Positions 23,072 to 63,948 of a DNA stretch of 64,000 nucleotides are shown here, one piece after another. The stretch covers positions 182,264 to 246,263 of the forward strand of contig NW_003314421.1 in the NCBI RefSeq assembly GCF_000143415.4. The letters are read 5' to 3'. The DNA comes from Selaginella moellendorffii (taxonomy: Eukaryota > Plantae > Lycopodiophyta). Both the position numbers and the translations under genes were made by a program. The notes under the pieces were generated by a model. The model did not search any database and was not told the origin of the DNA. It saw nothing but the letters and a program-made list of their open reading frames with translations. Within the stretch, counting starts at the first letter, position 1. Every line of letters begins with the position of its first letter.

Positions 23072-23995
23072 GGAATCCTCCACTTCTGGACATGCTTGAA
23101 CCAGTTGATGCTCCTCCAGTCGAGGACAGGCCTCCAACACCTCCACCACCTTGTCGACGTCGTGGCATGCCTGATCCGATGCCAGTTCTTGATCACCCCC
23201 GGGAACGTCAGCCCTCGTTAAAAGTCCGGGAAAATGCTAAAGCAGATGCTGCAAAGCTTGATGACTTTTGTGTCCTTGTTGACATCAGCATCCCCATGAC
23301 CTATGATGAGGCCGTCTCAGGACCTGAGGCTTCATCTTGGATGGAAGCTATTGCGGAAGAAGTTTCTTCCATTCAGGTTAACGGAACTTATATTCCAGTT
23401 GATTCAGCGCCATTGGGATGACGTGTTTTGGATCCAAAATGGATTTTTTCCAAAAAGTATGGGAAAGATGGTCAGGTTGTATGTTATAAGGCACGGTTGG
23501 TTGTTCACGGTTTTCGCCAAGTCCATGGCCTTGACTACAATGAAACATTCTCACCGGTTGTAAAAATGGCCAACCTCCGTACTCTTTTTGCACTTGCGGC
23601 TGCTCGCTAATGGCAAGTCCACCATATGGACGTCAAAACTGCATTTTTGAATGGGGATTTGCAAGAGGACATCTATATGCATATACCTTCTGGTTTTGAG
23701 GACGATGTTGCCCCTGGTGGCCCTATATGGCAATTGCGGAAAGCTTTGTATGGCCTAAAACAGAGCTCCCATATTTGGTATCAAAAATTTGGTGCCACCC
23801 TACGCGCTCAAGGCTTTCGTCACTGTCATGCTGATCACAATGTGTATGTGAATGGTCATGCTGAGCACATGCTTATTGTGGCCCTCTATGTTGATAATTT
23901 GCTCATCATGGGTGATGACACCAATGCCATTGCTGCTCTGAAAGCTGCTCTCAGCCAGCAATTCCAGATGAAGGACCTTGGCCAAGTCTCCTACT
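23072..23995 (+). mobile_element. Ty1/copia RT fragment, duplicate of 38524-39447
   Basis: Near-identical sequence; YKARLVVHGF.Q..GLDYNETFSPV, MDVKTAFLNG, YVDN/DLL. Confidence 0.92.
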
Positions 23996-24022
23996 AAACC
24001 CTAAACCCTAAACCCTAAACCC
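23994..24022 (-). repeat. Interstitial telomeric repeat, ~4 units (C-rich on +)
   Basis: ctaaaccctaaaccctaaaccctaaaccc. Confidence 0.95.
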
Positions 24023-24408
24023 AGTTACATGGTGAGGAAGTCCTAGAGGATAATAGGACTTAATGGTCAAGCCTTTAGACTCAGTAGTGGTGTTGACGAA
24101 TATAACCATATATAAAAAAGGACTTGGTGGGGACAGTAGAAAGGATATTGGGGGAGGGTGTCCCCCATGTCTCCGGACATCCTATGTTGGTGCTAATATG
24201 TCGGTGGTCCCTTTGGGTGTTGGTTATAGGATTGAATAGGTGGAACACTTAAACCAAGTGCAAAGATTAAGTGGCATAAATGTCATTCTTAGGGCTAGCA
24301 AGTCCCCAAGTCCGAAATAGGACTTATGGAGATTGTGAGTTAGACTCCTCTATGTGGTCGAACGTGTAGTTAAGTGACTAAAGTAAAATGGAAAATTTAG
24401 TTGTTTAT
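24023..24408 (+). mobile_element. 3' part of the large LTR family
   Basis: Matches the reverse complement of ~48637-49155 with deletions; ends ...gttaagtgactaaagtaaaatggaaaatttagttgtttata. Confidence 0.75.
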
Positions 24409-26411
24409 AGCAAGATTATCCTTATATAGTTGAGGATGGCACTTATGAATTTGAGATTATAGAAATAGTAGTTAAGATTACCTTTAATAAAGGTTGGAAC
24501 AACCCAAGGAATTTTGGGGTGTACTCAAAGGATGAGTTGGTGTTCTCATCATGGAAAGATAATTCTAAAGTGCAAAAGTAACTTATGTAGAATAAAGAAT
24601 AATTAAGTGTTAGAGTAACATTTGCAAAGATAGTCCTTGTGAATAGGATATGAATACAAAAATTTGTATTCAAATGTGGTAGCACCTCAAAAAGTAGTTA
24701 AGAGGCTAGAACTTTACAGGATGATGGACTAACAAAGTCTAAAAAAGTTATTTTCTTCCATAAAAACTTTTCTATGACTTTAGTATAACATATTCTGTCA
24801 TCAATGAGATGCCCACTGTTCTCATACTTCGGTGGGGAGGATGTGCTACAGTCCAATGACCAAGTTGCACACTATTGCATGAAAGCACCAATCATTGCAA
24901 AGGCTGCAGATAAGGCCCAAGGGGGTGTAGTGACAAGGGAGGAGTGTGTTGGACACCATGGCGACCAACTCCTTGTCTTGGGTACCAGGCCAGCAATGGC
25001 CCAATTGCACAGGGAAGGCTGTCTAGGTTGGGCTTGTGAGCAAGAGCATGCACTCCTTACCCTTTGCAATGATGTCCACCTTGGACAAGTCACATGCCCT
25101 TGTCCTCATCTTGGTGCTCCTCGCCTTCCTCTCCCTCCTCGGCCTCCTGCACCTCATCTCATGCCTTCTCAATTCCCTCTCAATAGCTCTGTGCTCCATT
25201 GACCTAATTCTCCTGACATCATTGGAACCAACCTTCATGCTTTTATTTACAATCTTCTTCTTTACCTTTAGCTAAAGGTCCAATACCCAATCTCAATTCT
25301 AAGAGATAAGAACACAGGTAATGTCGAAAGTTATGAGCTAAGTTTTATCCTATTTTTTTCCTTTTTCCAAATAGGACATTCAAAATAAAAAGGCAAATTT
25401 ATAAATTTAGACAATTTATATTTAAAGCTATTAATGGTTTGAACTTAGATTTTAGTGTTGGGCATAAAAACATTGTAAATCACGTCCATATCAAAACCAT
25501 TGTGTGCAACTGGTTTTTAGACATGGTTTTTCTAACAAAAACCATTGTGATTGTCCTTGTGGCTGAAAATCAGTTCATACCTTAAGTTTGCATATCGGGT
25601 AGACATAGAGCACTTGTACAGTGACAAGAAGGAAGCAGCTGCATCCGATTGTCACAAGCTGCTTCCCTGCCTGCTGGAGTTGTGAATGGGTTTGCGCCTC
25701 GAGGATCAGGTGATTGTTGAAATGCTGGGGAAGTGTTGGGCCTGTTTGCAAACCACATAGTCTGGATCACATACTCAGGGACAGACAAGGTTCTTCTTGC
25801 CGACAGCTGATTCTGCTGCGAGTCTAAAGTTTATGTTGTGAGAATAGCGATCCATGGAAACAAGAGTGTTTTGGAGGTCTGTGGTAGTCCATGTGGCAGA
25901 GGTACTCGCTCGGATCCCTTGCAGGTGACTGGCGTGCCTAGAGTGCTGCCCATTGTCCATGCGCAAAGCGTTACCCAAAGTTCCAAGAGCATAGCGGCGC
26001 CCCAAGATTATACCTGCTATACAGGCCTGAGCCAAGCCAAGTGCTATGACCAAGCGGGACTCGTGGCAAAGGTTGGGATATAGAAGCGCACATCCCTCCA
26101 ATGTTTCACTCTCTCGTTTGCTAGGCCGGGCCGAATTGCTCTCACTCCGCACGGTGAGGAATGGAATCCATTTTACTCTTGAGTGAAAAGTAGATAGTTT
26201 TTAAATTTACACTCTGAATCAATTTCGACATGAAGACCTCGATGAAGCCCCACTTACTCTGCACCGTCTTTGTTGCAGATAACATCCCTGGCTTCATATG
26301 CCGCTAACGGTGGTTGTAGCCAGGCCTCGCAGGCTTTCGAGAAGATGGCATGGACGTGGTTTCAGGCAAGTGTGTTACCATGATGTTCTCCCAAACTTTT
26401 CAAAGCTTTAT

Positions 26412-27745
26412 TTACATTGAGGAACCTCGCAACCAAGAGCTTGCAATCGCCCAACAATCCATCTCTCTCGCCTGGAGCAGCACATACAAGAGTATGGCAC
26501 AAACACATCCCACCGCGAGATTGGATCCCTGCGAGATGGCAATGCAGCAGAGCATCACAAACAAGTCCCTCCTACTAGTTTGATCCGGGCACGCCATCGC
26601 CAGCTCCACCCCGGAGAAGAGCAGCAAGATCCCCAGCAGTCCCACTGGAAAAGCTGGCAGAATTCTCACCAGTGAGCCTCCCAAGAGAAGCCCCAACACA
26701 AGCTTGCCACCGCTACCCCACTCGTGGCTCCGAAACGATACTGCCCGGCCAGTTCTCCAGCGCCATGGCAAACCGGGAGAGCTCCAAACCAGCAGCCCAC
26801 CAAGTTCATGAGCCCCACGCTCACCGAGACTTTGGTCGGAGTCACGGAGTCCTTCTTGGCCGGGAAGAGATCGCTCGAGAGCTTGCAAACCGCCACCACC
26901 GAGTTGAAGATAGTGAGAGGGAGCTGCGGGATGGCGGCTCTCACAAACCGTCTTCCAGTCGTGGGAAGAGATTCGAGTGATCCGTGGCGTGGCCGGGCCA
27001 AACTGGAGCTCCTTGAGAATGTGTGGCCTCCTCACGAACGCCAGGATGATCCCGAGCACGAACACTGCCAAGGCAGTCGGGATCCTCTGGAAAAACTTCA
27101 CGAGCTTTGACGATCTCGCTTGATGTTCTTCACGGTGCTCTTCATGATCATCGTGATGACGATCACCTTCACTGTTCGTCACGAAGTACTCGTAGCCCTC
27201 GCCAGATCTATTCACCAGCACGATGAATGCGAAGCAAATCACTGCGAGGAGAATTCCATCCAAGCCCAGGCATGGTCGATCACCCATTGCCTTGTCCCTA
27301 GAGAGATTTTGATCCTTCATCACGTACGTGACAGCCTTGACCGCGAAAGAGCCCATGCGCAAGCTGGATGCCACGAACCACCGGCAATGGCACGATCCAA
27401 GCCACGACCCGTGATCAAGCCCGTGGTTCCAAGCACAAACACGATCGCAGACACAGTGATCCCCGCGGCCATGATCTCATCCACACTGAGATGCTTGGAT
27501 TCGGTGAAGGCCACCGCCGCGATGGATTTCATGGGCTGGACAGGCATTGGCACGCCAAAGAGCACGCTGGTGAGAACGTTGTAGATGCCCGTGGCGATGA
27601 GAGACCAAGATCCATGCCATTGACGAGAGCTACAGCCATGACGATTGGGATGAATGTGCCCAGGTCGCCCAGCGAGCCGCTGAGCTCCTGCCATGGCCGC
27701 CTGCACTGGAGATTGCCGCGCAGCCCTGTGCCATCACTGCGCCAC
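26412..27745 (-). pseudogene. MOT1: Molybdate transporter (MOT1 family) pseudogene, copy 2, near full length
   Basis: GDLGTFIPIV, PMPVQPMKSIAAVA, AAIPQLPLTIFNSVVAVC, VSVGLMNLVGCWFGALPVCHGAG.LAGQYRFG, FPVGLLGILLLFSGVELA spread over several frames. Confidence 0.92.
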
Positions 27746-27974
27746 TGACCTCCAAGAACCCTAAATTTATATAGTCCAAAAGCTGGCTCTTGTATGGAAA
27801 TGAGCAAAGAATTTTCTCTTTAATCATACATGATGATCTGTCAAAGAATACCCTCTTTAATCACGGAATCTACACTCACACTAGTTTCAAACAAAATTGC
27901 TACTATTTGCTAGTAGAATTCCTAGAATCTACACTTAAAGCTTGTTCTAGCACAACACCATGAGATCTTTGTCC

Positions 27975-28308
27975 TCAATTTCTAGACTTTGCTCCCAGCA
28001 AAGCAATCCACCATGCAGCAGTAACCTTGCCTCGATCCTTGGTAGTGGCGAGATGCCCTTCTTGGGCGTGTGCCAAGAACATAATGACCCACAAGTGGCA
28101 ATCGCGTCGCTCCATGGAGTCAAACACTGCTCGCGCGCTGGATCTTGCCCAGCTTGCCATACCGAAGGATGACGAGATTAGAGAGGTAGCAGCAATCGCC
28201 AGGCAGCATTTGCTTCTGGGCGATCTCGATCCAGGAATGGGCATCGATCGCCTGCGAGGAATTGGTCGCAGAAGTGATGAGATCCACACACTCGGACTTG
28301 GACAGCAT
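27975..28308 (-). pseudogene. PPR fragment, copy 2
   Basis: Near-identical to 5591-6009 with an additional deletion. Confidence 0.8.
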
Positions 28309-28734
28309 CAGTTTCTCTCGACACCGAAGCTAGCCTCTCACGAGATTAGAGAGAAGGGAGAGATTAGGGAAATTCTCGATGGCATCCTTCCAAAGTAGCG
28401 CTTCCCGGATCCCCTAGCTTGGTTTGTTCATTCTAGTGAGCCAACGCATTGCAAAGAGCTTTTCCTAGCTGCCTTCAAACAGTTTCCTTAGACACTATAG
28501 ATAGGAATAGAAATAAAGTGTGTAACTTGTGAACCTTAAAGTGAAATAAAAATGACACTACAAATATGGCAATGGCTAAGCAAACATCTAAACGTACAAC
28601 CTTCCACTGTTTCCCCAGTCTTGCAAGTGTTTGGGGAGCAATCTTGTTTGAACATTTACCCCAAAGATGAATTGGCGAGTAAGATTACTCACCTAGACAC
28701 CTAAAGTAGTAAGAAACAAATGTATATAAATGAA

Positions 28735-29294
28735 TAGCATGAGGCCTCATGCCAAGAAAATGACTTCATCCCTCCATAATACCTTAATCCAATCTACAAA
28801 TGGATGGTGTCCAACCTCACACAAAAACATTAGTGTGAGGCCTCACACCAAGAAAAAAAGCCCACCCACCTCCTCTAGCCTAGTTTCTCGACACCAATCT
28901 CCTTTGCATGCATGTTTATTGCATAAGTGAATAAGATTGTCATCAAGAAACTGAGCAATCTAAGTGTGAGGCCTCATGCTAGTAACTCCATCAACACATT
29001 GTGACTGGACTCATGCTTAAGGATTAGCATGAGGCCTTATGCTAAAGTGCTAAAAAGATTTTTGTTTGTCTAGTTTCTTGAACGTCTGTCCATGGGACAA
29101 GTAATATTATTATCAAGGAATTGGCAAACACACCCCATCCATTCCTAAGTGTGAGGCCTTATGCTAATAACCTCCTATAGAATTACCTCCACTACCCCTT
29201 TCATACACCCCATCCATTCTTGAGTCCTCATGCTATTAACCTGCTATAGAATTACTTCCATTACCCCTTTTACTTAGCATGAGGCCTCACACTA
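28735..29294. repeat. Dispersed array of ~7 palindromes TAG(C/T)(A/G)TGAGGCCTCA(T/C)(G/A)CTA, probably a DNA-transposon subterminal region
   Basis: Copies at ~28735, 28831, 28963, 29025, 29148, 29221 (partial) and 29275; array repeated at ~52150-52745 and ~58550-59030. Confidence 0.7.
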
Positions 29295-30187
29295 AGATCC
29301 ATTCTCTCCCATTTCAAAAATATTTTAAGTAATTCTAATAAGTTCTTTCATGTTTCTAGGCCCAGCATGATTAGGAGAGTGAGGGCGATGAAGACAAGGT
29401 ACAACACAAGAGACAAAAAGTGACAAGTGATGAAATTCAAGACAAGAGTCCTTCCTCATCATGAAAAGAAGAAGAAGATGATGATGAACCACCACAGAAG
29501 AGGGTTACATGTGAACTTTGGAGCAAGGTTGCAAGCAATAATGCATGGACGAGCCAGGGACAAAAACCTCGATACAAAGCAAGAAAAAAAAGTGTCACAC
29601 ACTAAATAAACCAAGAGATGGTAGAAATGAAGGCTCCAAAGAGAGGAGCAAAAGGGTGAAATGATGACAGCACAGTTACAACAATAGGGGTGAAAAAAAA
29701 GACTAGTATCGACAGGACACCCTTGTTGAAGTACAAACACTACTACTTCAACGATCAAACAATCTACGAACTCCTAATGTCTTAGTGCATCATTGATGCA
29801 GCTCTTTGTCCACGATGCCCTCAAGGAGCTGATGATTGTACAAGAGAACTCAGTGGATCTAGGTGATGCAATCCCAATCACTATGGACAAGGATGTTTGG
29901 ACATTTGTCGAAAGGATAAGCAAGGAAATAACAAAAAATCCAACAGTCAAATTCATTGTCATGTCTAGGCAGTACTTGACAAAAGCAATGCAAGAGATCT
30001 CTTCTGATCTGATATACACGAAGAAGATGCAGTCAAAATTCTCAATATGATATTTCTAAATCATGAAGGGGTCAACACCACAGGATACCATTATTGAGAT
30101 ATCCAATCTTGTGAACACAAAGGCAAAGAACTAGCACAAAAGTAGCCTCAATGACAAACTTGTACATAGTCACCACAACTAAGAGAG

Positions 30188-31694
30188 TGTAAGTGACTAA
30201 TTTTTCTATTCTACTTTAGTCATTTAACCACACCTTCGACTACTTGGAAGAGTCTTATTCACAACCTCCATAAGTCCAATTTAGGATTTGGGACTTAGTA
30301 GCCCCGAGAATGGCATCCATGCCACTCAACCTTTAGACTTGGTCCAAGTGCTCCATATGTCCAGTCCCATAATCAACACCCCAAGGTACCACTAACATAC
30401 TAGCTCGTTACGCTAAGGCCATGCCTATTCAACTTGGTCACACTGGTGGTTTAACACCACTTGTATCGTAGTCCCATCTTTCAAAGACTGGGCCATCCAT
30501 CCATGAGAGACCATCCAATATCCATTCCCTAGCATCCTTAAGATGCCCACAGACATGGGGAACAACCTTCCCCAATATCCCTTTTACAGTCCCCACCAAG
30601 TCCCTTTTCTATCCATGGCCGTGTTCGCCAACATTGCCACTGGAACAAGGCTCATAAGCTCGACCACTAAGTCCCACTATCCTTTAGGACTTCTTCACCA
30701 CATGACCGTATCCTTGGTCATTACACCAGAGGACCACTCCTCTTCCTTTCCATAGTCTGGGACTTTGGGACAATATTTTAGAACATCATGGCCCTATGCA
30801 AGCCTCATGGGTACTCTCCCCACCTTCTGCCTTTGGGTGCTCTAGCTATGGGCTTAGAGTGAGGTTCCGTTAAGCCACGCCAAGTATCCAAGTAGGTAGT
30901 GCCACCCACGCTTGGACTAGGAGCATCGACCATTTGATCTCCAAGGGGAACTAGAGTTGGCTCTTAAACACTTCACCAAGTTACCTTGCTTATCAGTCCG
31001 TATTCACTCTAACTTTGGACTTCCCAGTGGTTATCTCATCACCCAATAGCTGGGCTTAGCCTTCTTGGGCCAAACTGGCCTTTCCTAGCCAAATTGGCTC
31101 CATTAGGGTCCAACCCCCACACTCTCCCTACTATACTTTTGAAACCCCCCCCTCTTGGGGGACGATTGCTTTGGGCTTTCACCCAACATTCTGTATTAGT
31201 ATTTAGACCCGGACTTGGACTCGGACTTGGTCTCAGACTCGGTCTCGGTCTCAGTTCCATCTCAGACTCCATCTCGGACTCCATCTCGGGTCCATCTTGG
31301 ATTTCATCTCGGGTCCATCTCGGACTCCATCTTGACTCCATCTCAGGTCCGTCTCGGACACCATCTCGGGTCCATCTTGGACTCCATCTCGGGTCTATCT
31401 TGGGTCCATCTCAGACTCCATCTCAAACTCCATTTTGAGTCCATCTCGGACTCCTTCTTGGACACTTCTATATGTCATGTGTTGGTCCTCTTGTGTCCCT
31501 TTTCTAGAGACTCACTTATTACTCACTTCATGCTTGTTCCTCAAGCACTTCGTTGGGAGTTCCACTCCCACTCTCGACCTTTTAAGTTGGACCTTTTAGT
31601 CCAAACATATTACGCTTATTTGGCTCTCGCTTCAGCCACTACCACATGGCACCCTTTTGGCTCCACTTTGGGGCTTAGGGATTTGTGTTTCACA
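30188..31694 (-). mobile_element. Solo LTR of the large LTR family, no TSD
   Basis: TGTAAG...TTCACA termini; collinear with 48637-50481; flanks GAGAG and ACTCC do not match. Confidence 0.85.
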
Positions 31695-32480
31695 ACTCCA
31701 CCACCCATATATGAAGTTCGACGTCTTCATCGAATGATAAATTATTTTATAAAGTAATACTAATATGTATTACCCTTTCCATCCTTGGCACCTAGCCAAT
31801 ATTCGTTAATGGTTTGACACCGAAGGCTCATTATGTGTTGTCCATCCTCCAAGAAGCATGGTCTCTCTAACATAAAGACTCGATCGACCACCTGTGGTGG
31901 TTCTCTCCCTTTCATTGGTTTAGTTCTTGCTAAATTTGTTTGAGACTCTTCCTCTATCTCAATCCCACTACTTATTCTCGAGTAGTCTCAACTTCTATCG
32001 ATATAACCATTCCACTTTGGAACTTTTGACAAAAATTCAACAGTCAAAAGGGAAACTTTGTTACATCTGTGGACGTAGTTTAATATGCCAACTATAAGGG
32101 CAAGAGATATCAATCAAATGAAGTACTTACATGGCTGCTTGTAAATAATCAAACAGAAGAGAAGGAAATGTTTTAAGAGAGACACCTAAGCTCAGGCTAA
32201 ATACATATATATGGATTTACTATATATGACTATACATGAATTTAAAATAACTGAAATAATAATAATTATGTCTTTTTAAACTAAATTTCTTAAATAAACT
32301 TAAATATGGATTGTTGTGCACTCAACGTTGTCAACACATTATCTATGCCGTTTCCCTTACTGTCACCAATAGAGAATCCAGTCACCTACCAAAGGAAAAC
32401 CAGAATCGTAAGACTCTCTTGGTATCAAAGTCTAGCTGAATCGCACCTGGAAAGCCTCCTTTACCACTAAATACTGGTGA

Positions 32481-35162
32481 TCACATCTCTCTCGTACACT
32501 TTTTGGTATGCCTTACAGCTGCAATCTGCTCGATCATACCAAAATTGGAGCCGATAATAACACTCGAGGCGTATATATCCATCGGATTAGACTTTTGATA
32601 TGAGAGAGCTGATGAATTGTCCTTGTCCGAGAAAAATACGTATCCAAAGTTCGTTCGAGCATACTCTACAAAAAACAAAAATTAAAAATAAACGAAAAAT
32701 GTATAACGTATGGACTTACTTTCATCGCCAGGCTGCTCATTGTCCTTGATAGCAATCAGTCTTCGGACGTCACTCTTAACATTTCGAACGACTTCCGACC
32801 AATCCGCAATGGCTGGCTTAAGAGGGTCTCCAGAGCACTTGCTTTGGATGTACAAAAGAAATGGCTCCAAATCAATGCCTTTTACTTCCTCGAGTATCAG
32901 GAAGGTATCAGCCCCTCTGTTCCGAGGTCCACACATGGCCCAAGTCCCTGACCTTTGAACCTCCTCCTTTGAGCCTGGACTACTGTGTTTGATCCGAAAC
33001 CAAAAAACTAAAAACAAGAACATACCTGGACTCAGTTGCTTGATTGAAACTGGAAAAGTGGGGAACCTGAACTTTCGGTTCTTCAGATTGTCAGGGATGT
33101 ACCAATCGCAAGGCAACACGTCTGCCAGCATGAAGGTGTCTGAACCCCCCGATAGTAACTGCAAATAACAACATGTTAGTAACCGAGACTATGAAAGACT
33201 ATGAACGTAGAATTCACATACCTTATGAATGTAGATGCTGAAGATCAGAGACAACAAATCGTTGTCTTCCTTCTGCTTCCAATCATCCGTTGACATTGTT
33301 GTCAAATCAAAAGTTGTAGAGCCAAAAAGGTCCTCCCGCTGGAGTGTTAGCTTATGCAGTAACACAGGTGAAAACTCCACCAGAGCCTTTTCTCCGTCAA
33401 GAACCACAGCCACTACTCCACAACTCTCCAGAGCTTCCCATGTCAAAACATTCTCTCCTGGAAAGGCCTGCAGCAGAACCGGTCCATTCCTTGAGACATG
33501 CTCACGAAGCATCGATGCTTGAATTGCTCGTAAGAAATAAGAAAATCTCTCATCCCCGGCAAAGCCATTGTAATACTTGAATCTTCTGCATAGGCTCCAC
33601 ACACGATCCAGAATCCGCCTTACTTTGTCTCTCAGGAAGGGCTCCTGAATTCTCAGCGCAAGGTTGTCAATGTCAAGGGCCATGTCTGGGTCATCTGAAG
33701 CCAAAGCCTGAACCATGAAGGTAATCAACCTCGGATTCCCTCCGCTCAGCTTGCACAACAGCTGCATGCCATCATTTAAAGCGTGAAGTTCTTCACGGTT
33801 TGAAGTCCTCAGCACCTTGTTAAAGACTTGCAACACCAGCTTCTCCCGATCGCTGCTGCTGAGAGGGTTGACAGGAATATAAATCACTTCAGATGATCCA
33901 GTGTCACCGCTCTCTCTCAAAGATGCCGCTGTGAAAAGGTTGGTCGCTCCGAGCATAGTGACAAACGTTTTGCCACCCACGTTGCTGTACTTCCAAACTA
34001 TGAACTCCCGAAACACTTTCTGAACAAGGACGTTGTTCCTCCCAATCTCATCAAAGAAGAACGACAGGAAAATGTTTTGGTCTCCGAGCTCGCAGACTTC
34101 TCGCAACAAAGCTATCACGTCATCAAACAGGAGGAACTTCTTCAAATCAGGTGCTTTGGCATCAACAACAGCGACAAGCTCTTGGTAAAAAAAACACGTC
34201 CAAGTCCCAGTATCTTTTCTGATGTTATCTTGGCCATCTGCTCTAGAAACAGCTGCATGCAAAGTCCTCAGGGCCAAAACCTGAGCATCACCCAGCCCGG
34301 CCTCACCAATGAAAGTTGAAATAAAATCATGGTACATGACCACGTCGAGATGTTCAACGGTGCTCATCATGGCATCCCACGGTCGCACCTCATCGATTGA
34401 TGTATCGAAAAGCGAGGCAAGTTGTTGAATCCTTAGCCCTGGATCACTCTGTTGCCTTCTCATCTCAATGAGTATTTGTGGGAGTGCCTTGCCAAATGAT
34501 GTTTTTCCCGCACCCGGGAATCCAACCACACCCATTATATGGTGGAGGCGCCTAAACACATCCCAGTCTGTGTGTTGATTGCTCATGAATTGCTTGTACA
34601 ACAGCCAGTTACCCCTGAGCAATGCATCCACAGTCTTCTCTCGTCCAACAATGGGAAACTGCTGCCCGATGTCCTTCAGAGACAAGCCAGTTGGCAAAGA
34701 AGATAATGAATCCCTTTCAAGGCATTTTCTGTACATGCGGGCATGCTTAAGACGAGGTCCAAAGAGCTCCTTCAGCTTGGCAATCCGATCACGGGCGTTT
34801 GACCAATCAACTCCACTAGAGGGAATGAGCTGCTGACGGAGCTGCTTCTCCTTCTCCATCCAGTGCTTCTGAAGCTCACGGAGCTGGTTCTCCTTCTCAC
34901 GGAGCTGCTTTTTCTCCTCCATCCAGTGTTTCTGAAGCTCACCCTGCGTGGAATCCACCTTCTGGTCAGCGCGCTCCACCTTCTGCTCAACCTGCTCAAT
35001 CGCTTGTTGCACGGCCCTGATCTCCGATTCCACTTCCTCAATCTGCTGCTGAATCGATCGCTCAGGCCCATCCGCCCTTTGCCGCTTCCCAGCCCTGATA
35101 TCTGATTCCAATTCTTCCCCATCCGCCCTTGGCGGCTTCCCATGAGACTGCTCTCGCACCAT
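32481..35162 (-). CDS. Crinkler/RHS-type (CR) protein: N-terminal coiled coil + P-loop NTPase + PD-(D/E)xK-like nuclease; spliced and apparently intact
   Basis: Exon 35162-33222 has Walker A GFPGAGKT, Walker B FFFDEIG and SGGNPRLI. GT-AG introns at 33221-33159, ~33025-32975 and ~32719-32668 keep the frame. C-terminal NRGADTF...LYIQSK. Confidence 0.75.
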
Positions 35163-35167
35163 GGCGG

Positions 35168-35199
35168 AACCCTAACCTAGGTACTCTGTTTTTTAGGGT
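35168..35199. promoter_or_regulatory. Telo-box-like motifs just upstream of the CR gene ATG (divergent from CDKAL1)
   Basis: aaccctaacctagg and tttagggtt flanking a short spacer. Confidence 0.35.
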
Positions 35200-35395
35200 T
35201 CTAGCCGTAGAATGGGACATTGTGCGAGGCGAGCTGCATTCGATGTGAGGTTGATAGAAAACACCTGAAACTTGCATTGAGGTATGTTCAGCTGAATCTG
35301 TGAAATGGTGTAGACTTTACTGAGTTTACCTGCATTTGGGCAGGTAAACTGGAGTAGGTTCACGTAGAAAAGAACTAATGTTGACTACTCATTCA

Positions 35396-51243: not shown

Positions 51244-51284
51244 ACCCTAAACGCCTAAACACCCCTAAACCCTAAACCTAAACC
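51244..51284 (-). repeat. Degenerate interstitial telomeric repeat
   Basis: accctaaacgcctaaacacccctaaaccctaaacctaaacc; inverted copy at 59896-59936. Confidence 0.9.
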
Positions 51285-53152: not shown

Positions 53153-53890
53153 ATGCTGTCCAAGTCCGAGTGTGTGGATCTCATCACTTCCGCGACCAAT
53201 TCCTCACAGGCGATCGATGCCCATTCCTGGATCGAGATCACCCAGAAGCAAATGCTGCCTGGTGATTGCTGCTACCTCTCCAATCTTGTCATCCTTCGGT
53301 ATGGCAAGCTGGGCAAGATCCAGCGCACACGAGCAGTGTTTGACTCCATGGAGCAATGCAATTGCCACTTGTGGGTCATTATGTTCTTGGCACATGCCCA
53401 AGAAGAGGCAGTTCCCGCCCAGAACGGGCGAGCCGGGCATTAGCCTGGCGAGCGCATTCTGGAGGGAACGAGTGAGCCCGTGCTCGGGAATGGCTTTAAC
53501 AGGCTGCGGCGAGACCGTTAACAGACATGTGGATGAATGTTATTCGAGGATGAGAGGGTTCTCCAGAATTGGCAGCTGGTAGCCTGGTTCTCCAGAACCT
53601 GGCAGCTGGCAGCTGGGTTCTGGAGAACCTGGCAGTTGTCAGCCACGTTCTCGCAGAGAACCTGACTCGATCCGACGGCTGCCAACGGTTGGATCAAGTT
53701 AACGGGTGAGCCACAGCCTGTTAAGGGCATCTTGCCACTACCAAGGATCGAGGCAAGGTTACTGCTGCATGGTGGATTGCTTGGGGCGAGCTGGGTGTGT
53801 GGAAGAGGCTGAGGAACTTGTGAGGAGCATGCCTTACAAGCCAGTTTCAGTGGATTAGATGTGCTTGCTGGGAGCAAAGTCTAGAAATTG
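53153..53890 (+). pseudogene. PPR fragment, copy 3, with a ~320-bp insertion
   Basis: Matches copies 1 and 2; insertion ~53406-53724 splits gcccaagaa|gggcatc. Confidence 0.8.
53500..53720. mobile_element. MITE with ~23-bp imperfect TIRs flanked by TTAA
   Basis: TTAA-CAGGCTGcGGCgagaCCGTTAAC ... GTTAACGGgtgaGCCaCAGCCTG-TTAA; internal ccagaacctggcagctgg repeats. Confidence 0.7.
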
Positions 53891-54144
53891 AGGACAAAGA
53901 TCTCATGGTGTTGTTGCTAGAACAAGCTTTAAGTGTAGATTCTAGGAATTCTACTAGCAAATAGTAGCAATTTTGTTTGAAACTAGTGTGAGTGTAGATT
54001 CTGTGTCCTCGTGATTAAAGAGGGTATTCTTTGACAGATCATCATGTATGATTAAAGAGAAAATTCTTTGCTCATTTCCAATGGTCGCTTGGTAAAGTAC
54101 AAAAGCCAGCTTTTGGACTATATAAATTTAGGGTTCTTGGGGGT

Positions 54145-55470
54145 CAGTGGCGCAGTGATGGCACAGGGCTGCGCGGCAATCTCCAGTGCAGGCGGCTGGC
54201 AGGAGCTCAGCGGCTCGCTGGGCGACCTGGGCACATTCATCCCGATCGTCATGGCTGTAGCTCTCGTCAATGGCATGGATCTTGGTCTCTCATCGCCACG
54301 GGCATCTACAACGTTCTCACCAGCGTGCTCTTTGGCGTGCCAATGCCTGTCCAGCCCATGAAATCCATCGCGGCGGTGGCCTTCACCGAATCCAAGCATC
54401 CCGGTGTGGATGAGATCATGGCCGCGGGGATCACTGTGTCTGCGATCGTGTTTGTGCTTGGAACCACGGGCTTGATCACGGGTCGTGGCTTGGATCGTGC
54501 CATTGCCGGTGGTTCGTGGCATCCAGCTTGCGCATGGGCTCTTTCGCAGTCACGGCTGTCAAGTACGTGATGAAGGATCAAAATCTCTCTAGGGACAAGG
54601 CAATGGGTGATCTACCATGCCTGGGCTTGGATGGAATTCTCCTCGCAGTGATTTGCTTCGCATTCATCGTGCTGGTGAATAGATCTGGCGAGGGCTACGA
54701 GTACTTCGTGACGAACAGTGAAGGTGATCGTCATCACGATGATCATGAAGAGCACCGTGAAGAACATCAAGCGAGATCGTCAAAGCTCGTGAAGTTTTTC
54801 CAGAGGATCCCGACTGCCTTGGCAGTGTTCGTGCTCGGGATCATCCTGGCGTTCGTGAGGAGGCCACACATTCTCAAGGAGCTCCAGTTTGGCCCGGCCA
54901 CGCCACGGATCACTCGAATCTCTTCCCACGACTGGAAGACGGTTTGTGAGAGCCGCCATCCCGCAGTTCCCTCTCACTATCTTCAACTCGGTGGTGGCGG
55001 TTTGCAAGCTCTCGAGCGATCTCTTCCCGGCCAAGAAGGACTCCGTGACTCCGACCAAAGTCTCGGTGAGCGTGGGGCTCATGAACTTGGTGGGCTGCTG
55101 GTTTGGAGCTCTCCCGGTTTGCCATGGCGCTGGAGAACTGGCCGGGCAGTATCGTTTCGGAGCCACGAGTGGGGTAGCGGTGGCAAGCTTGTGTTGGGGC
55201 TTCTCTTGGGAGGCTCACTGGTGAGAATTCTGCCAGCTTTTCCAGTGGGACTGCTGGGGATCTTGCTGCTCTTCTCCGGGGTGGAGCTGGCGATGGCGTG
55301 CCCGGATCAAACTAGTAGGAGGGACTTGTTTGTGATGCTCTGCTGCATTGCCATCTCGCAGGGATCCAATCTCGCGGTGGGATGTGTTTGTGCCATACTC
55401 TTGTATGTGCTGCTCCAGGCGAGAGAGATGGATTGTTGGGCGATTGCAAGCTCTTGGTTGCGAGGTTCCT
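54145..55470 (+). pseudogene. MOT1: Molybdate transporter (MOT1 family) pseudogene, copy 3
   Basis: Near-identical inverted copy of 26420-27745 with the same frameshifts; 3' end fused to the acidic gene fragment. Confidence 0.92.
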
Positions 55471-55697
55471 ACGAAGAAGTTGTTTTTAAGAAAGCCGAAC
55501 TCGAACCAAGTGCAAAGGATCCTGGCGCTGGCACAAGCAAAAGGAAACCTGAGTGCAGAAAAAGGAAAAAGAGTCCCGCTTCAAATGAGAAAGCTAAAGA
55601 TGACCAGGAGACGGAATGATGGCAGACTTCTTCTCGAGTGGAGGAAAGGTAAAGCTCTAGTGAACTCGGCCAAGGATGACGGGGAAGATGAAGAAGT

Positions 55698-58553
55698 GGA
55701 AGACGAAGAAGATGATGATGAAGAGGAGAAGGATGAAGTGGAGGAGGACGAGGACGAGGAGGAGGAGGAGGCTGAGGAGGACGAAAAAGATCCCCCTGCA
55801 AAAGTAGATAAAAAAGGAAAGAAAATTGCCTCTTTGAGGATGCTGCCGAGGAAGAAGATGCGGAAGAGGAAGAGGATGATGACCAACCGGCAAGAAAAGC
55901 ACAAAAGGGTGAAATCCGTTCCAAAAAAAAGAACGACAGGCCTAGAAGAAGAGATAAAGAAGGTAAGAAAAACTAATAATGTTGTATGAACTTAATTTCC
56001 TCAACAGAAAACAAGCCAAATAACAAAATTCATCCTTCCGTGAAACAGATTCACTGTGACGTTCCGGCGGCCAAAAGGACAGTTGTGAAAGTTCTTTTTA
56101 AGAAAGCTGATGCATCACTATCAGACGGGAATAGAGACACTGCGAGTGGCGTGCGCAGTAAGAAGGTTGGAAAGGAACTTCTTGTTGGTTCAAACGATCA
56201 TGCGGGGAGCGCGCACAGTGAGAAGGTCATGAAGGAAGTTGTTGTTGGTTCAAACAATCAGGAGGGTATGGGCGCCTATACTGCAAGCGGCGCTCACACT
56301 GCGACGGCCAACCGGTGTTGCAGAGGGGTTGGAAATTCCTGAAGTTGTTGTGATTGAAATAGAGGCTAAATAATCCTGCAAAATATGCGAAGAAGAAGGT
56401 TGGCGACCGACGCTGACAGAGGAAAAAGAAAAAGAGAAGAGAACTCAGGAAAGCAGCCACAAAGGAGAAAGGTCAAAGAGGGGAAGCCTAGGCAAGGAAA
56501 ACCAAAACAAGGGAAACAAGATCTCATAGACAACACACCCTTGACCGTTCCTCTGAATTTTAAACACAAGGCCATTGGATCGTACTTCAAGGCTGGAGGA
56601 TCATTCAGAGAGAATAAGGGGCATGCAAATGCAAAGGAGAGTGGTTTCACTGAGGATGATGAGTTTCGGGAAGGAAAGAAGGATGAGTCTCGAGAAGGAA
56701 ACAAAGATGACGGAAAAGTACAGACATTTGTCAGGTCGAAGTCACACAGCTGAGTACGCCAGTTGAGAACCTTACAAACGAATCTTTCCAGGTAGCAGAC
56801 TGCACGTCAGTCACAGGCGCTGAGGAGCATGAGTGGCATTTGACTTCGGTGTTAGAGAAGCTTGAGAGCACAAGCTTTATTCCAAGGCATCTAAGTGTGA
56901 GTTCTTCCTTGAGGGGATTGCTTACCTGGGGAATTTGATCTCAGCTAATGGTGTTAGGATTGATCCGAAGAAGGTTGAGGTGGTAGTGAATTGGCCTGTT
57001 CCCACTATGGTGCATGACCTTAGGAGTTTCCTTGGAATGGCTGGTGTGTTCAGAAAGTTTATAGATCACTATGCAGAGGTGGCTGCTCCTCTAACAGATC
57101 TACTTCAAAATACTACTAAGCATGCAACAATCAAGTGGAGCGATCGTTGTGAACATGCTTTCGAACAGCTCAAGCATCGGTGTGCTACAACTCCAGTGCT
57201 TCAGATAGTGGATCCAATGAAGCCGTTTGTAGTGGAGTGTGATGCTAGTGATGTGGCGCTGGGAGCTGTTCTGCTGCTGCAAGAAGGCCGTCCCGTTGCT
57301 TTCTTGAGTCGCAAGTTTGATAGTACTCAGCTAGATTGGCCGGCTAGAGATCGAGAGTTATATGCGGTCGTTTGTGCCACCAAGGAGTGGAGGCATTATT
57401 TGTATGGTGCTGACTTCAGTGTAGCATACTCGGATCATCAGACGTTGCAACATTTTCTGAAGCAGACCGATCTCTGAGGCAGGTTGGCTCGTTGGCAAGA
57501 GTTTTTGCAAGAGTTCAACATGGAGATCCGATATAAGAGAGGTAGAGATAATCAGGTGGCTGATGCTCTATCGAGGCTTGTGAATTCAGTAACGATCACA
57601 AGACTCTCAAGTAAACTTCTGGAAGAGATCAAGGAGGCTTATGATTTCGACTCCTTTGTAAAAGAGGTGCTAGCACATGTATTGAAGAGGGACGCTTCTT
57701 CTAAGAAATCTGATGGTGTCTTCCAGCGAGAAAAGTTTGCTTCGTATAGGATGGAGGATGGGGTGTTGTGGAAGAAGAACCGGGTTGTGGTTCCTCGAGT
57801 GAGCTCTCTTCTCTTCCCGATTTTGTCAGAGTGTCACTCTACACCTTCCTCAGGACATCCAGGAATTCAGAGGACGTTTGAGTTGGTTAAGAGACATTTC
57901 TTTTGGCCTGGTATGAAATCAGATGTGGAAAAGTACATACGAGAATGTTTGACTTGTCAAGCAGTCAAGGCTGATCGTCAGAAGCCCGCTGGTTTTACAA
58001 CCTCTGAATGTACCCAGTGGAAAATGGGAGAGAATTTCCATGGATTTTGTGGTGGGGCTACCCAAGAGTCAAAGGAAGAATGATTCAGCGTGGGTGGTGG
58101 TGGACAGATTGACGAAGATGACCCACTTCATTGCTACTAAGCAAACTGTAAAGACTTCTGACTTGGCTCAACTCTTTATCCAAGAGTTGTATAGGCCGTT
58201 TGGTTTGCCAGAGGATATAGTAAGCAATCGCGATCCAAAGTTTACGAGCAGGTTCTGGCAAGATGTGTTTAAGCAACTCAATACCACGTTGAGTATGTGC
58301 AGCAGTGATCATCCTCAATCTGATGGCCAAACAATCTCAGTTCAAGTCAACTTTTCCGGAGTTTGATTATGATCTGGACGATATTCCTGATGATGACGAA
58401 TACTCTTCTTGAGGAAGGGGAGAGAGTAGATTCGTTGGCAATGAAGTCTTTTGAGTTTTTGTACTTCGAGAAAAGCTTCATGTGCATTAGACCTTCCTTG
58501 AATGAAGTTAGCTCCGTATTGAGCTATGTACTCCGAACTTGAGTCTTCATTCT
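55698..58553 (+). repeat. Inverted segmental duplicate of 43176-46031 (acidic fragment + gypsy pol)
   Basis: ORF translations essentially identical (56935-57477 = 44252-44794); a few SNPs. Confidence 0.95.
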
Positions 58554-60809
58554 CACACCAAGAAAAAAAGCCCACCCACCTCCTCTAGCCTAGTTTCTTG
58601 ACACCAATCTCCTTTGCATGCATGTTTATTGCATAAGTGAATAAGATTGTCATCAAGAAACTGGGAAAAATATCACAAGCAATCTAAGTGTGAGGCTTCA
58701 TGCTAGTAATCTCCATCAACACATTGTGACTGGACTCATGCTTAAGGATTAGCATGAGGCCTTATGCTAAAGTGCTGAAAAGATTTTGGTTTGTCTAGTT
58801 TCTTGATGGTAATCTTGCTTGAACGTCTGTCCATGGGACAAGTAATATTATTATCAAGGAATTGGCAAACACACCCCATCCATTCCTAAGTGTGAGGCCT
58901 TATGCTAATAACCTCCTATAGAATTACCTCCACTACGCCTTTCATACACCCCATCCATTCTTGAGTCCTCATACTATTAAGAATTACTTCCATTACCCCT
59001 TTCACTTAGCATGAGGCCTGACACTAGGATCCATTCTCTCCCATTTCAAAAATATTTTAAGTAATTCTAATAAGTTCTTTCATGTTTCTAGGCCCAGCAA
59101 TCTAAAACACTTCTACATGAGTCCATTAGAGTGAAAAGAGGCTGCAACTCCACACAACCACAAAAGTGGACATTAGAGATACAAGATGATGATCTAGTGT
59201 TGGTGGATCTTACCAACCCAAACAGTCCAATAGTCTATGGGATTGTCATCAAAGAAGAGGAGATTCCTAACAAAGACATGAATAGGGAAGGAGGGCCATT
59301 TATACAGAGCTTCAAAAGACATTCATCAGGAATATTGTTCAAGACTCAGAGTTTATTCCGTCAACTACAATACAGTCTGCAGAGAAGGAATTGATACAAC
59401 CTTCACTGCTTATGGAATCCTCAAGGACAGACTAACCTTGTCAAGGGCATTGTTGTTGTGGACAGTCAACAATAGGATTCTAACTGAGAGACTTTTTGAT
59501 CAGAGGGAAATAGAAGAATTGGAGCATCCATTCCATGACCTCTCCAACTACAATCCAAATGATGGACATAAGGTCGATTAGGTTGTTGATGATAAACATA
59601 CATTAAGCGATACATCCTCATTAACATCAATGTCCAATGATTAGGAGAGTGAGGACGATGACGACAAGGTACAACACAATGATAATGAAGAGGATAATAG
59701 TGAGACAAAAAGTGACAAGTGATGAAATTCAAGACAAGAGTCCTTCCTCATCATGAAAAGAAGAAAAAGATGATGATGAACCACCACAGAAGAGGGTTAG
59801 ATGTGAACTTTGAAGCAAGGTTGCAAGGAATAATGCATGGAAGAGCCAGGGACAAAAACCTCCATACAAAACAAGAAAAAAAAGTGTCACACAATGGTTT
59901 AGGTTTAGGGTTTAGGGGTGTTTAGGCGTTTAGGGTCAAAGACAGTCTACGGTGTTGCAATCGGGCGAGATCGCTAAACATGTATGTACATTCCCCATGT
60001 CCCAATGGGACTAATACAAAAATTGGGTGTGTCACCCTCTCAATGAGCTGCTCTACGTGATCCTCTTGTGTCACAGCGGGACCTAGTCCTGGAGTAGAAG
60101 TGGACATGGTCGTCTCAATCAAATCATGTTGATGTCCAAGTCTCCCCCACGTGCTGAATGTAGAACAGAGTCTGGGGGGTGCCACTGCTAGTGAATCTCA
60201 CCACCTACCATTCTGCCAAAGCATGGGAGCCATCTAGACTACCACTCCTCTAGCTGCCTCGGTTTTGCCCGCTCCTTTAGGATGGTGTAATGAAGCCGCA
60301 CTGCTGCAAGAGTGAGTCTCCACCACGATGCCACCATTGCTAATATCCTCGCTTGTTGCCCATCAAAGCGGCAATGGTTCCATGCCTCCATAAGTGCCTG
60401 CACTCCAGTCGCCCTCTAGATGGACCATCGCTCGTGGCCCATCGCCTCCCAGACTGACATCCCGACTTCAGCCCCTAATGCATCCCATTGAACTCGCATG
60501 TTCCATCCATGACATCTATAACAGCGAATACGCCTCCAAGCTGGACCAATGGCTGGACCTCTAGCTCCCTCAAACCAGTGGAGGATATCCCCGCTCTGAG
60601 CCTTGAACTCTGGAATGTCTCCTAGTTCCTGCATCGCCTTGAAGATCTGTCGCCATACCTTTCTCGCCACATCACATATCCAAAGTACATGTCGCGCCTG
60701 TGAGACACAAAATCCCTAGGCCCCAAAGTGGAGCCGGAAGGGTGCCACGTGGTAGTGGCCGAAGTGAAAGCCAAACGAGTGTAACACGTTTGGACCAAAA
60801 GCTCCGACT
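58552..60809 (+). repeat. Inverted segmental duplicate of 50371-52637, running into the gap
   Basis: ORF translations nearly identical (59131-59394 vs 51786-52049; 59922-60185 vs 50995-51258). Confidence 0.95.
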
Positions 60810-61048
60810 NNNNNNNNNNNNNNNNNNNNNNNNNNNNNNNNNNNNNNNNNNNNNNNNNNNNNNNNNNNNNNNNNNNNNNNNNNNNNNNNNNNNNNNNNNN
60901 NNNNNNNNNNNNNNNNNNNNNNNNNNNNNNNNNNNNNNNNNNNNNNNNNNNNNNNNNNNNNNNNNNNNNNNNNNNNNNNNNNNNNNNNNNNNNNNNNNNN
61001 NNNNNNNNNNNNNNNNNNNNNNNNNNNNNNNNNNNNNNNNNNNNNNNN
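60810..61048. other. Assembly gap
   Basis: Run of N. Confidence 1.
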
Positions 61049-62234
61049 AGCTCAAGTCTCTAAATCAAGCTCACAAGGCTGTGAAGAGATTGACTCAGCT
61101 CCGTGATAAAAAGCAGTTCCCTCAAGACCTTCGCATTCGTGTGCCAAAGCTTGAGGTGACCTCTCACGGTCAGGAACTTCTTGATGCCAGCATCAAAGCA
61201 ATCCACGAACAATACTTGAAGGACCTTCTTGATTCTCTGCTCAAGGCACGAGAGGCTGAGGCTGCTACCCTTGCGGATCTCATCAACCATGGACTCTCTC
61301 AACGTTTTAATGATCGAATGGATGATTTTGTTCACTGTGCTTTGCAGGCTTGTGGCAATGCACAACGAGAGGCTGTCACACATACTCTCAATGCCCGCAA
61401 GCATCAGTTGATAGCTGAATACCAACGTGCGACTGCAATTGGAGCAGTGGCATATGGAGTTGAGGAGAGCAAAAAGGAAAATGCTCGCAAGCAAAGGGAA
61501 GCTGCAGAGGATGCTGCACGAGCCAAGGCGGAGACACTGCCCAAGGAAGACACTGTTAAGATGCTTGTCCAGAGCTGCTTTGACAAGATGTGGAAGGAGA
61601 GGGAGCGTGGAATTCCGAGACAACACCACGAAGATGCTGGCAGAGGCACCAGATCACAAGGCAAACGACAGCAAAGGACGGATCACTCCACATACGTGAA
61701 GCAGGCTCTTCAAAGACACGCAAGGTTTCTCTCCCCAGTGGTGAACGTGACGTTACCCATGGACGGCAGGGAAACGAGCAGGGGCAGAATGTGGTTACTG
61801 GGACTCCTCCCACCCATTCCGATGCCCCGGGTTTTTCTTCAAGGGGTCCCTTGCACCGGCAATCTCCAACCGTGCTTGGTTCCCAGCCAGCCATGACTGG
61901 CAGAGGTGGCCAACGCCAGTCTCGAGGAAACGGTCGACCCCCACGGTCCCAACCGAACTGGCCAAGCGAGGGCACCAGACTACACCACGACCTCCTCCAG
62001 GAGCCCAACAACGCCAGCCAACTCAGAACCAGAAACCACCTTCACCTCCCAGAGGACAAGAGATGCAGCCCTCACAGCACCACAACAACACCCCACTCCA
62101 CGAACGAACCCAACGCTATGGCTGGGGAAGAAACTCGCCTCCACAGCAACACCCGCACTCTCCAGTTACGGCAGTGCCTGTGGACAGAAAAGGCAAGGCA
62201 AAAGTTTCTGGCTACCTTTGATTGCCCCGCATGA
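61049..62234 (+). CDS. Upstream ORF1 of the Penelope-like element (coiled coil, basic tail; 5' end in the gap; frame junction uncertain)
   Basis: Helical, charged peptide EESKKENARKQREAAEDAARAKAE directly upstream of the PLE RT; overlapping frame-3 ORF 61590-62234. Confidence 0.6.
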
Positions 62235-63939
62235 AGCTTTACTTCATTTTGCCGGCAATCAAAAAGTTTCCCAGCTAGAAAATAGAGTGGAGATTGGTGC
62301 TGTTCACAATTTGTCTTCTCGCATGTTGAGTGCCGCTGAAAAGCGCCTCCTTGCTCTTGGGCTCTCATTCATTCCTAATCCAGTGCCTCTCACGGCCAAA
62401 AAGATTATGGAATGCTTAGATGACTTTCAACGCTCAGTCCGTCTTCGTCATTCGTTTAAGGACAGCAACAGTCTTATATCAGAGTTTCGGGTTCCCAACC
62501 CAAACTTTGATCCTCCCCCTGCTTCCTGGCACATGGAGTCACGAGTTGCCCGCATTCGAGAGCACCTTCTCCAACGTCTTTCCTGTTGTAAAAGACCTCG
62601 ATCTTTTCTAAGAGGATGGAGACGTGATGCAGTCCTTGCGCTGCGACACGATCATAGTATTGTGATTAAGCCAGCCGACAAAAACCTCGGCGTAGTTGTT
62701 CTGGACCGCACGTGGTACATTCAAGAGGCTATGCGCCAACTCAATGATCCTCTTGTCTACAAGAGAGTTGAGTCGATTCCACATCAACCCATGCATGAGC
62801 GCCTCCTCGAACTTCTCCTGAAGTATAAATCTTGCTCGTGGCTGGACAAGAACACAGCCAAGTACCTCACCACTTTTCCCTCACCTCCACGTAAAGCTTG
62901 TTTGTTGTATTTTCTTCCAAAAATACATAAGCAGCCAATTCGTGGGAGACCAATTGCTAGCTATGTTGGCTACATTTGGGAGCCACTTGCAAAATGGCTT
63001 CACCGCCAACTTTTTGGCATTCTCCTCCAACAGGAAACCTTTCTTATGGACTCCCACACCCTCCATGATCTTCATAAACAACAGCTCCCAAAAGACTGCC
63101 TCCTCTTCACTTTTGATGTGGAGTCGCTCTACCCGAGCATTCCCACACGTGAAGGGCTCTATCGCCTCCATAAATTTGTATATACAAATTTTGGAGATTC
63201 AAGGCAAGCACGCTTTATCATGGCTGCTGCAGGACTCATCCTTGAACACAATTATGTTGAGTTCGATGGGAGTTATTTCCTTCAAATCCGAGGCACTGCT
63301 ATGGGGTCAAACTTTGCTGTGGTGTATGCTTGCCTTTTTCTTTGCTCCCTCGAGGACGAGTTTAAGGCCACCTCTCCTAAATGGCCAATATATCTTAAGA
63401 GATATATTGACGATGGTGTCGGAATTTGGGATGGATCAAAAGAGAGCTTGGAATGCTGGTTGGCTAGCTATGGAAGCCTCTGCAATTCTATAAAAATCAC
63501 CTCAGTGATCTCATTTGAATCTATGGATATTCTAGACATCCATTTTTTCAAAGGCCCACGCTTTGAGAAATGCAGGTGCCTAGACTCCACCACCTTTCAA
63601 AAGCCACTAAATGCATACCAATATCTTCCATGGAACTCAACGCATCCTCGACACCAAAAGATTGCCTTCATTCGTGCTGAACTTCAGCGTTACCTCCTAC
63701 GAGAGAGTAACCCTGAGAGCTTCTGTGCAATTCGCAAGCTTTTCTATACTCGTCTCCGTGCACGTGGATACCCAAGAGCCTTCCTTATTGAAGCTTTCTG
63801 GACAATCCATTATACAGACCGAGATAATGTGCTCTACTCTCCATCACGCAAATCCAGTAGCAATAGTCTACAGGCCCCCCTCATTTTCAAGCTGCCTTAT
63901 ACTCTCCATAGTGCAGCACTTGATGTGGGGACACCCTAA
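61906..63939 (+). CDS. Penelope-like element reverse transcriptase without GIY-YIG endonuclease (Athena/Coprina-type)
   Basis: IVIKPADKNLGVVV, YFLPKIHK..RGRPI, FTFDVESLYPSIP, QIRGTAMGS.FA, RYIDD, YLPWNSTHP, RARGYP; ORF open throughout and ends shortly after LIFKLPY at a TAA within CCCTAAA. Confidence 0.93.
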   Translation: MANASLEETVDPHGPNRTGQARAPDYTTTSSRSPTTPANSEPETTFTSQRTRDAALTAPQQHPTPRTNPTLWLGKKLASTATPALSSYGSACGQKRQGKSFWLPLIAPHEALLHFAGNQKVSQLENRVEIGAVHNLSSRMLSAAEKRLLALGLSFIPNPVPLTAKKIMECLDDFQRSVRLRHSFKDSNSLISEFRVPNPNFDPPPASWHMESRVARIREHLLQRLSCCKRPRSFLRGWRRDAVLALRHDHSIVIKPADKNLGVVVLDRTWYIQEAMRQLNDPLVYKRVESIPHQPMHERLLELLLKYKSCSWLDKNTAKYLTTFPSPPRKACLLYFLPKIHKQPIRGRPIASYVGYIWEPLAKWLHRQLFGILLQQETFLMDSHTLHDLHKQQLPKDCLLFTFDVESLYPSIPTREGLYRLHKFVYTNFGDSRQARFIMAAAGLILEHNYVEFDGSYFLQIRGTAMGSNFAVVYACLFLCSLEDEFKATSPKWPIYLKRYIDDGVGIWDGSKESLECWLASYGSLCNSIKITSVISFESMDILDIHFFKGPRFEKCRCLDSTTFQKPLNAYQYLPWNSTHPRHQKIAFIRAELQRYLLRESNPESFCAIRKLFYTRLRARGYPRAFLIEAFWTIHYTDRDNVLYSPSRKSSSNSLQAPLIFKLPYTLHSAALDVGTP

Positions 63940-63948
63940 ACCCTAAAC
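63933..63948 (-). repeat. Telomeric repeat (CCCTAAA)2 on the PLE sense strand
   Basis: accctaaaccctaaac overlapping the RT stop codon at 63937-63939. Confidence 0.85.

Follow-up and report, generated by a model that had tools for sequence, protein, structure and literature searches.

The window examined here is a 64,000-nucleotide stretch of the lycophyte Selaginella moellendorffii (contig NW_003314421.1, positions 182,264 to 246,263, forward strand). It is a mosaic of transposable element (TE) fragments and probably comes from a chromosome-end region. Five short telomere-like tracts lie within it, labelled A (23994-24022), B (47817-47843), C (51244-51284), C′ (59896-59936) and D (63933-63948); A, C and D share one orientation. 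The whole window was searched with a query of two telomere units, permitting up to one mismatch, and shuffled sequence served as the null. Eight matches were found, against 0.01 expected from the shuffles, at 23999-24019 (minus strand), 47817-47844 (plus), 51263 (minus), 59904 (plus) and 63934 (minus). Search and direct reading agreed on the five tracts, which a preliminary description had placed correctly; they are real and far above chance. On balance, we think it probable that they have three origins: D is internal to a Penelope-like element (PLE), C is a PLE-type tail of which C′ is a DNA copy, and A and B began as telomerase seeds.

An endonuclease-less PLE was identified by sequence identity and domain search at the right end of the window (61049-63964, plus strand), where the end of a first open reading frame (ORF1) is followed by a reverse transcriptase (RT) ORF (61906-63939). 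The latter encodes 677 amino acids, is 97% identical to S. moellendorffii LOC112343723 and gave a weak RVT_1 match in the domain search. Many of its 84 relatives, the closest included, carry PF28514/PF26215, and some carry RVT_1 too. Its distant relatives include PLEs bearing GIY-YIG; there was no GIY-YIG domain among the closest ones. Nor was this domain found in the RT ORF of the window, in ORF1 or ORF2 of the locus of the closest RT relative (scaffold GL377752.1, hereafter L001), or in three tested ORFs of 95-107 amino acids from the L001 3′ region. The window at 61049-63970 shares 98.5% DNA identity with L001 8719-11652. A full PLE is present in L001, with ORF1 (902 amino acids, 7191-9899), the RT ORF2, a 3′ region of about 2.2 kb and a tail that ends in ...GTCTTTGA-CCCTAAA-CG-CCTAAAC... 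and is followed by many telomeric units. It belongs to a head-to-tail chain of PLEs, the copies of which are capped or separated by telomeric repeats. An HH9 hammerhead was detected in a neighbouring PLE copy (L001 4584-4653, E-value 1.2e-7, below the gathering score). Rfam scans of the window, with gathering and E-value thresholds, recovered no hammerhead; the PLE 3′ region of the window runs off its end, and the 5′ end is hidden inside an assembly gap. By its features rather than by RT clade placement, the window element can be assigned to the endonuclease-deficient type of PLE.

Tract D consists of two units on the minus strand and holds the RT stop codon, which is the TAA of its first unit. 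Its units and the following CAGGTGAT recur twice in L001, at 11616-11629 and, near 3310-3335, in what is left of a truncated PLE. Since it is conserved in three PLE copies, D is a fixed internal part of the element that joins nothing, and its earlier listing as a joining tract is not upheld. The L001 copy has one extra base right before the equivalent tract, and its ORF reads through it. The window stops matching this 98.5%-identical copy 16 bases past the tract (63965-64000, compared with L001 from 11648 on), which may reflect an insertion or a variant PLE 3′ region.

Tract C is degenerate and C-rich on the plus strand, and C′ is its exact inverse. The approximately 83 bases to the left of C, together with its first 30 or so bases, form a conserved PLE-type 3′ tail (51161-51284, plus strand), 86-88% identical to L001 6380-6503 and 13829-13953; they had previously been taken for the flank of a long interspersed nuclear element (LINE). 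The string GTCTTTGA-CCCTAAA-CG-CCTAAAC was invariant in all four aligned tail rows, two of which are the window copy and its inverted duplicate. Pure telomerase healing was rejected as an origin of C, its first units being fixed tail sequence; telomerase could have made only the last two or three units. The tail is attached at the break of a broken copy of a repeat, P (51287-55470, minus strand), at a position equal to 29601 in an unbroken member of the same family (26420-29775, plus strand, recognised by sequence comparison). The unbroken copy reads gtcacaca|CTAAATAAACC at 29594-29612, and the broken one reads gtcacaca|ATGGTTTAGG at 59886. This contrast, first drawn between about 29590 and 59885, was read in both copies. 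Tract C is a telomere-primed attachment of a PLE-type tail to the broken end of P, a mechanism that has been published.

An inverted duplicate of 50371-52637 was found at 58552-60809 (minus strand), with 98.9% identity, and it contains C′. Because its 2267 bases hold the LTR (long terminal repeat) end, the LINE, the tail and the P sequence together, C′ is a DNA-level copy of C that involved no second telomeric event, and not the independent joint that had been proposed. The duplicate ends exactly at an assembly gap (60810-61048), so the visible arm may not show its full extent. Alignment of both flanks showed antisense LTR on the left, up to 60809, and a first base after the gap that corresponds to L001 8719, inside the PLE ORF1. 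As the flanks differ in identity they are not continuous; at least one joint and some unseen sequence are hidden here, and the ORFs that cross the gap are artefacts.

Tract A is made of four perfect units, (CTAAACC)x4, C-rich on the plus strand. It is enclosed by two pieces of an LTR, here called E, which runs from TGTAAG to CTCACA. The left piece (20001-21228, minus strand, E 816-1845) ends in ...CTCACA and aligns to the E copies at 48637-50481 and 30188-31694, while the right piece (24023-24411, minus strand, E 1 to about 522) was recognised by sequence comparison. The two pieces share a strand and keep the order of E, with 293 bases missing between them, and this collinearity suggests that they are parts of one LTR copy. 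The flanks of A were contiguous before the insertion, judging by the collinear pieces; those of B are inverted LINE copies. Since both flanks belong to one LTR copy, A would represent the repair of an internal break rather than a chromosome end that was growing. On its G-rich strand, the tract continues from the 3′ end of the right LTR piece.

Three further fragments separate the left LTR piece from tract A. The first, a Ty3/gypsy 5′ LTR starting with TGTAAGG plus the start of gag (21229-22812, plus strand), is nested in LTR E and is 87% identical to L001 1696-3273. In L001 this LTR end is flanked by other sequence, so the nested gypsy is a true insertion. Its gag is cut at 22812, past which contigs from public sequencing runs carry on as gag. 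It is followed by a Ty3/gypsy integrase zinc-finger fragment (22810-23070, plus strand, Integrase_H2C2, E-value 2.4e-21), intact versions of which continue differently on both sides elsewhere. The joint at 22810-22812 shares GCA, and both this joint and that at 23070/23072 were defined by public-run contigs that continue as intact elements. The last fragment is a filler of 924 bases from a copia RT (23072-23995, plus strand, RVT_2, E-value 6.5e-36), which lies in sense beside the C-rich tract and shares CT with it at the join. It is 97.5% identical to 38524-39447, within a copia relative that runs on without repeats past 39447, as had been noted for position 39441. In the public runs the depth peak over tract A consisted of generic telomeric sequence. 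In the runs X1 and X2, contig depth added up to hundreds of thousands across the gypsy LTR and gag (window 21700-23150); elsewhere in the stretch it was in the thousands or fewer, except in bins with telomeric tracts or LTR E. The differences seen in these runs at 21700-23150 included many A>G and T>C changes, and X1 and X2 may be something other than plain genomic libraries from the same strain.

Tract B, (TTTAGGG)x3.9, is G-rich on the plus strand and lies between two LINE copies in inverted orientation. LINE copy 1 (46029-47816, minus strand) is 5′-truncated inside the RT region, as judged from a weak RVT_1 match (E-value 0.014) and motif reading, and its truncated end carries B. LINE copy 2 (47844-51160, plus strand, from sequence comparison, its 3′ boundary with the tail not being fixed) is in sense, is also 5′-truncated, and is joined to B through a shared AGG(C). 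It is 95.7% identical to inverted 46029-46614 over 586 bases. A solo LTR E (48637-50481) interrupts it, with the target duplication GGCGC at 48632-48636 and 50482-50486. The LTR was inserted before the inverted duplication arose, because the LTR end is also present in the arm copy (60699-60809). Its insertion interrupts a Cys/His motif close to the C-terminal end of the LINE ORF.

The plus-strand 3′ end at 47816 bears the repeats of B, and the DNA after B is LINE sense. With this polarity an extension from the tract would need an antisense template, which excludes the LINE mRNA. B is a head-to-head joint of a seeded end with a second broken end, and arose by fusion or by inverted duplication. 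A fold-back of LINE copy 2 was rejected as the source of B, as LINE copy 1 reaches 1.2 kb further in the 5′ direction. We also rejected the idea that the tracts are terminal inverted repeats of a DNA transposon at 47817-51284, because its interior consists of a LINE fragment and of a solo LTR bounded by a target duplication of its own, and because its right tract is a PLE tail.

The tract sequences, their polarity, the homologies and the positions of the joints can be read directly, and from them we infer the telomerase origin of A and B, the succession of events and how the breaks were repaired. The history that we regard as reasonably likely keeps D as a PLE-internal sequence, C as a PLE tail attachment with C′ as its copy, and A and B as telomerase seeds that were rejoined. 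At C, a PLE-type tail RNA ending in reverse-complement telomeric units would have paired with a G-rich 3′ end on broken P and been reverse-transcribed there, and a later inverted duplication at the DNA level would have copied the joint to give C′. At A, an internal break would have been seeded by telomerase with about four units on one broken 3′ end, after which the copia-derived filler of 924 bases was presumably added through the CT overlap. The other end would then have been joined, and 293 bases of LTR and the 3′ half of the gypsy element would have been lost. At B, one LINE copy would have been linked by its seeded end, head to head, with the 5′ end of the other. Both seeded ends may have been rejoined by microhomology-mediated end joining rather than becoming stable telomeres.

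Several points weigh against this history. The LTR E pieces at A do not overlap, and that they form one copy is read from their collinearity. In family copies of E, no more than one base (G) at the break matches the register of the repeats, less microhomology than telomerase healing typically shows. Among the listed contigs of four public runs covering window 21700-26500, all of them short, none spans a joint of A. The identity of the LINE is taken from the weak RVT_1 match and motif reading mentioned above; Pfam gave no match on most LINE pieces, and a protein family look-up of one LINE segment returned no usable family. At C, the 3′ part of LINE copy 2 lies upstream of the PLE-type tail, and the boundary between them is not fixed. 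Finally, the same sequence at A and at B would result if a telomeric fragment that already existed had been captured.

The copies that had been described as unbroken donors proved to be ordinary members of their TE families, with 94-97.5% identity. P, the LINE and copia each have several copies, and intact versions occur in public-run contigs. The complete copia element (36030-40371, plus strand, with gag, RVT_2 and 50-base terminal direct repeats) lies within window 29776-42233, which has a 95% paralogue in GL377630.1 (L002), about 78-101 kb from the low-coordinate end of a 1.13-Mb scaffold. There it is absent, the empty site being at L002 9139-9144, and the element is for this reason an ordinary insertion. 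Exact-protein look-ups with two window ORFs found no allelic contig, and the best relative locus was this paralogue. L002 carries a separate short tract, (TTTAGGG)x3.4 at 22742-22768, with flanks that look unrelated and run off the fetched DNA. Comparable tracts are present in another S. moellendorffii assembly.

Rearrangement joints that lack a telomere-like tract numbered at least eight in the window, and are located at 22812, 23072, 26420, 29776, 42233, 43176, 46034, 52637/58552 and 55470. The joints at 43176 and 46034 bound a Ty3/gypsy pol fragment, G, with RNase H and integrase (43176-46034, minus strand, by domain search), and share AG and GGA. An inverted copy, G′ (55695-58553, plus strand), is 99.8% identical to it; the flanks of these 2.86-kb copies differ on both sides, and neither lies within an intact element.

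The strongest alternative, which we nevertheless consider unlikely, is that the tracts are relics of chromosome ends, formed by repeated breakage and healing of termini, by fusion of ends or of sister chromatids (breakage-fusion-bridge cycles) and by block duplication between ends, which would have left islands of telomeric sequence where blocks meet, as in human subtelomeres. The window contains several inverted duplications, B is a head-to-head joint, the paralogue of 29776-42233 lies near a scaffold end and contains a short tract itself, chromosome ends are marked by PLE chains, and A, C and D all point the same way. However, the sequence on either side of tract A comes from one LTR copy, a better fit to an internal break, and the arms at B differ by 4.3%, compared with 0.2-1.1% in the other duplicates, so a single simple cycle would be insufficient.

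The preliminary description had proposed a single system of telomere-primed accretion, in which telomerase-capped ends prime the RT of a PLE or LINE and assorted RNAs are copied segment by segment. A PLE RT gene does lie within the window, C works in this way for the element's own tail, and at A the copia fragment, perhaps together with the integrase fragment, is in sense relative to the C-rich tract, as mRNA templating requires. Two sense fillers are, however, expected one time in four by chance. The strand extended from B is LINE sense, for which the LINE mRNA cannot serve as template. A lies within one LTR copy and hence at no growing end, C′ belongs to a composite DNA duplicate, and most joints have no tract. 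We find such a system improbable. The part of the proposal in which a PLE RT adds templates to telomeric primers holds for the element's own tail at C; it is not supported for unrelated segments, and the polarity of B is wrong for it. The part in which ends are capped by telomerase and then joined fits A and B, with their polarity, clean units and microhomology of 2-4 bases (the CT at A and AGG at B had been recognised as far-side overlaps), and does not fit D, C′ or the first units of C. The converse suggestion, that the tracts are fixed parts of TEs, is borne out by D and the first units of C; A and B are clean tracts of four units without a PLE tail. A narrower version, in which a telomerase seed primes the reverse transcription of copia or gypsy mRNAs by a resident RT such as that of the PLE and yields RNA-templated filler at internal breaks, also seems to us improbable. 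If true, it would give telomere-primed RT a role in repair beyond its own element.

Least probable is an assembly artefact, in which the A and B tracts, or the palindrome, would be chimeric joins. In its favour, a gap sits exactly at the end of the inverted arm and no spanning contig was among those listed for the stretch around A. Against it, the arms differ at about 25 positions (98.9% identity) and G and G′ at about five, which marks them as distinct copies, tracts of 27-29 bases are presumably too short for a false overlap, the collinear LTR pieces around A make biological sense, and another assembly of the species has comparable tracts.

Additional features were observed in the window and its relatives. 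A host-gene copy at 33189-35162 encodes 657 amino acids, compared with 846 in its relative. Segments resembling 5S rRNA, below the gathering score, were found at L001 19286-19374 and 19686-19774 and at window 417-977, in repeats shared with the start of the window, and are compatible with a Cassandra-like terminal-repeat retrotransposon in miniature (TRIM). At L001 6632-6713 a PLE tail cut to about 50 bases lies within a long telomeric array, capped on both sides, and is a minimal terminal addition. At L001 14060-14590 telomeric repeats abut a 5′-truncated gypsy RT fragment of about 510 bases (motif FEYTVMPFGLTNAP), directly followed by the start of LTR E; this is another mosaic joint beside the PLE chain.

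Endonuclease-deficient PLEs of the Athena/Coprina type have tails that pair with G-rich overhangs and form chains at chromosome ends (Gladyshev & Arkhipova 2007, as summarised in PMC8557442). Like them, the elements described here have an RT ORF that lacks GIY-YIG, short reverse-complement telomeric units in the 3′ tail, a candidate hammerhead in a related chain, head-to-tail chains split by telomeric repeats (L001) and a tail attached to a broken end (C). As far as that summary describes them, they differ in nothing essential for C and D. Unlike in those elements, a LINE copy and not a PLE body lies upstream of the tail here, and the joint is now inside a later inverted duplication.

Short telomeric inserts at sites of break repair are known from mammals, often with a deletion or added sequence (Nergadze et al.; PMC2246262, PMC7215372). 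Tract A resembles them in having a few perfect units at an internal position, a deletion in the flank and unrelated added sequence in the same scar, with one side carrying the repeats in the polarity expected of telomerase. It differs in its plant-type 7-base unit, its occurrence in a lycophyte and the at most one base in register at the break. The addition is also far longer (924 bases of copia, perhaps with 261 of gypsy), and the comparison was made with a family consensus instead of an empty orthologous site.

End joining with filler DNA at repaired breaks in plants is reviewed in PMC8395108. As in such filler events and in captured retrotransposon cDNA, unrelated TE pieces would have been patched into the break at A, and 2-4 bases are shared at the joints, but here a telomeric seed stands between the broken end and the filler, of which the template may be RNA or DNA. 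In yeast, Ty1 cDNA is captured at repaired breaks. LINE-1 insertion independent of endonuclease at dysfunctional telomeres was reportedly described by Morrish et al. in 2007. Tract C is similar in that a LINE and a shared tail lie beside a telomeric tract on a broken end; it differs in attachment through a PLE-type tail and not poly(A), and the polarity of B excludes priming from that tract.

Each component of the locus is a known kind of event, and no new accretion system is supported. Two of the tracts belong to a telomere-attaching retroelement described from Selaginella in 2007, and the other two probably mark places where telomerase acted on internal or fused breaks. Combining a telomeric seed, a long retrotransposon filler and a deletion within what appears to be one LTR, the scar at A would be a clean plant example of a process documented for mammals. 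Sorting the tracts in this way suggests that the frequency with which telomerase acts at internal breaks in this species could be measured by a genome-wide census.

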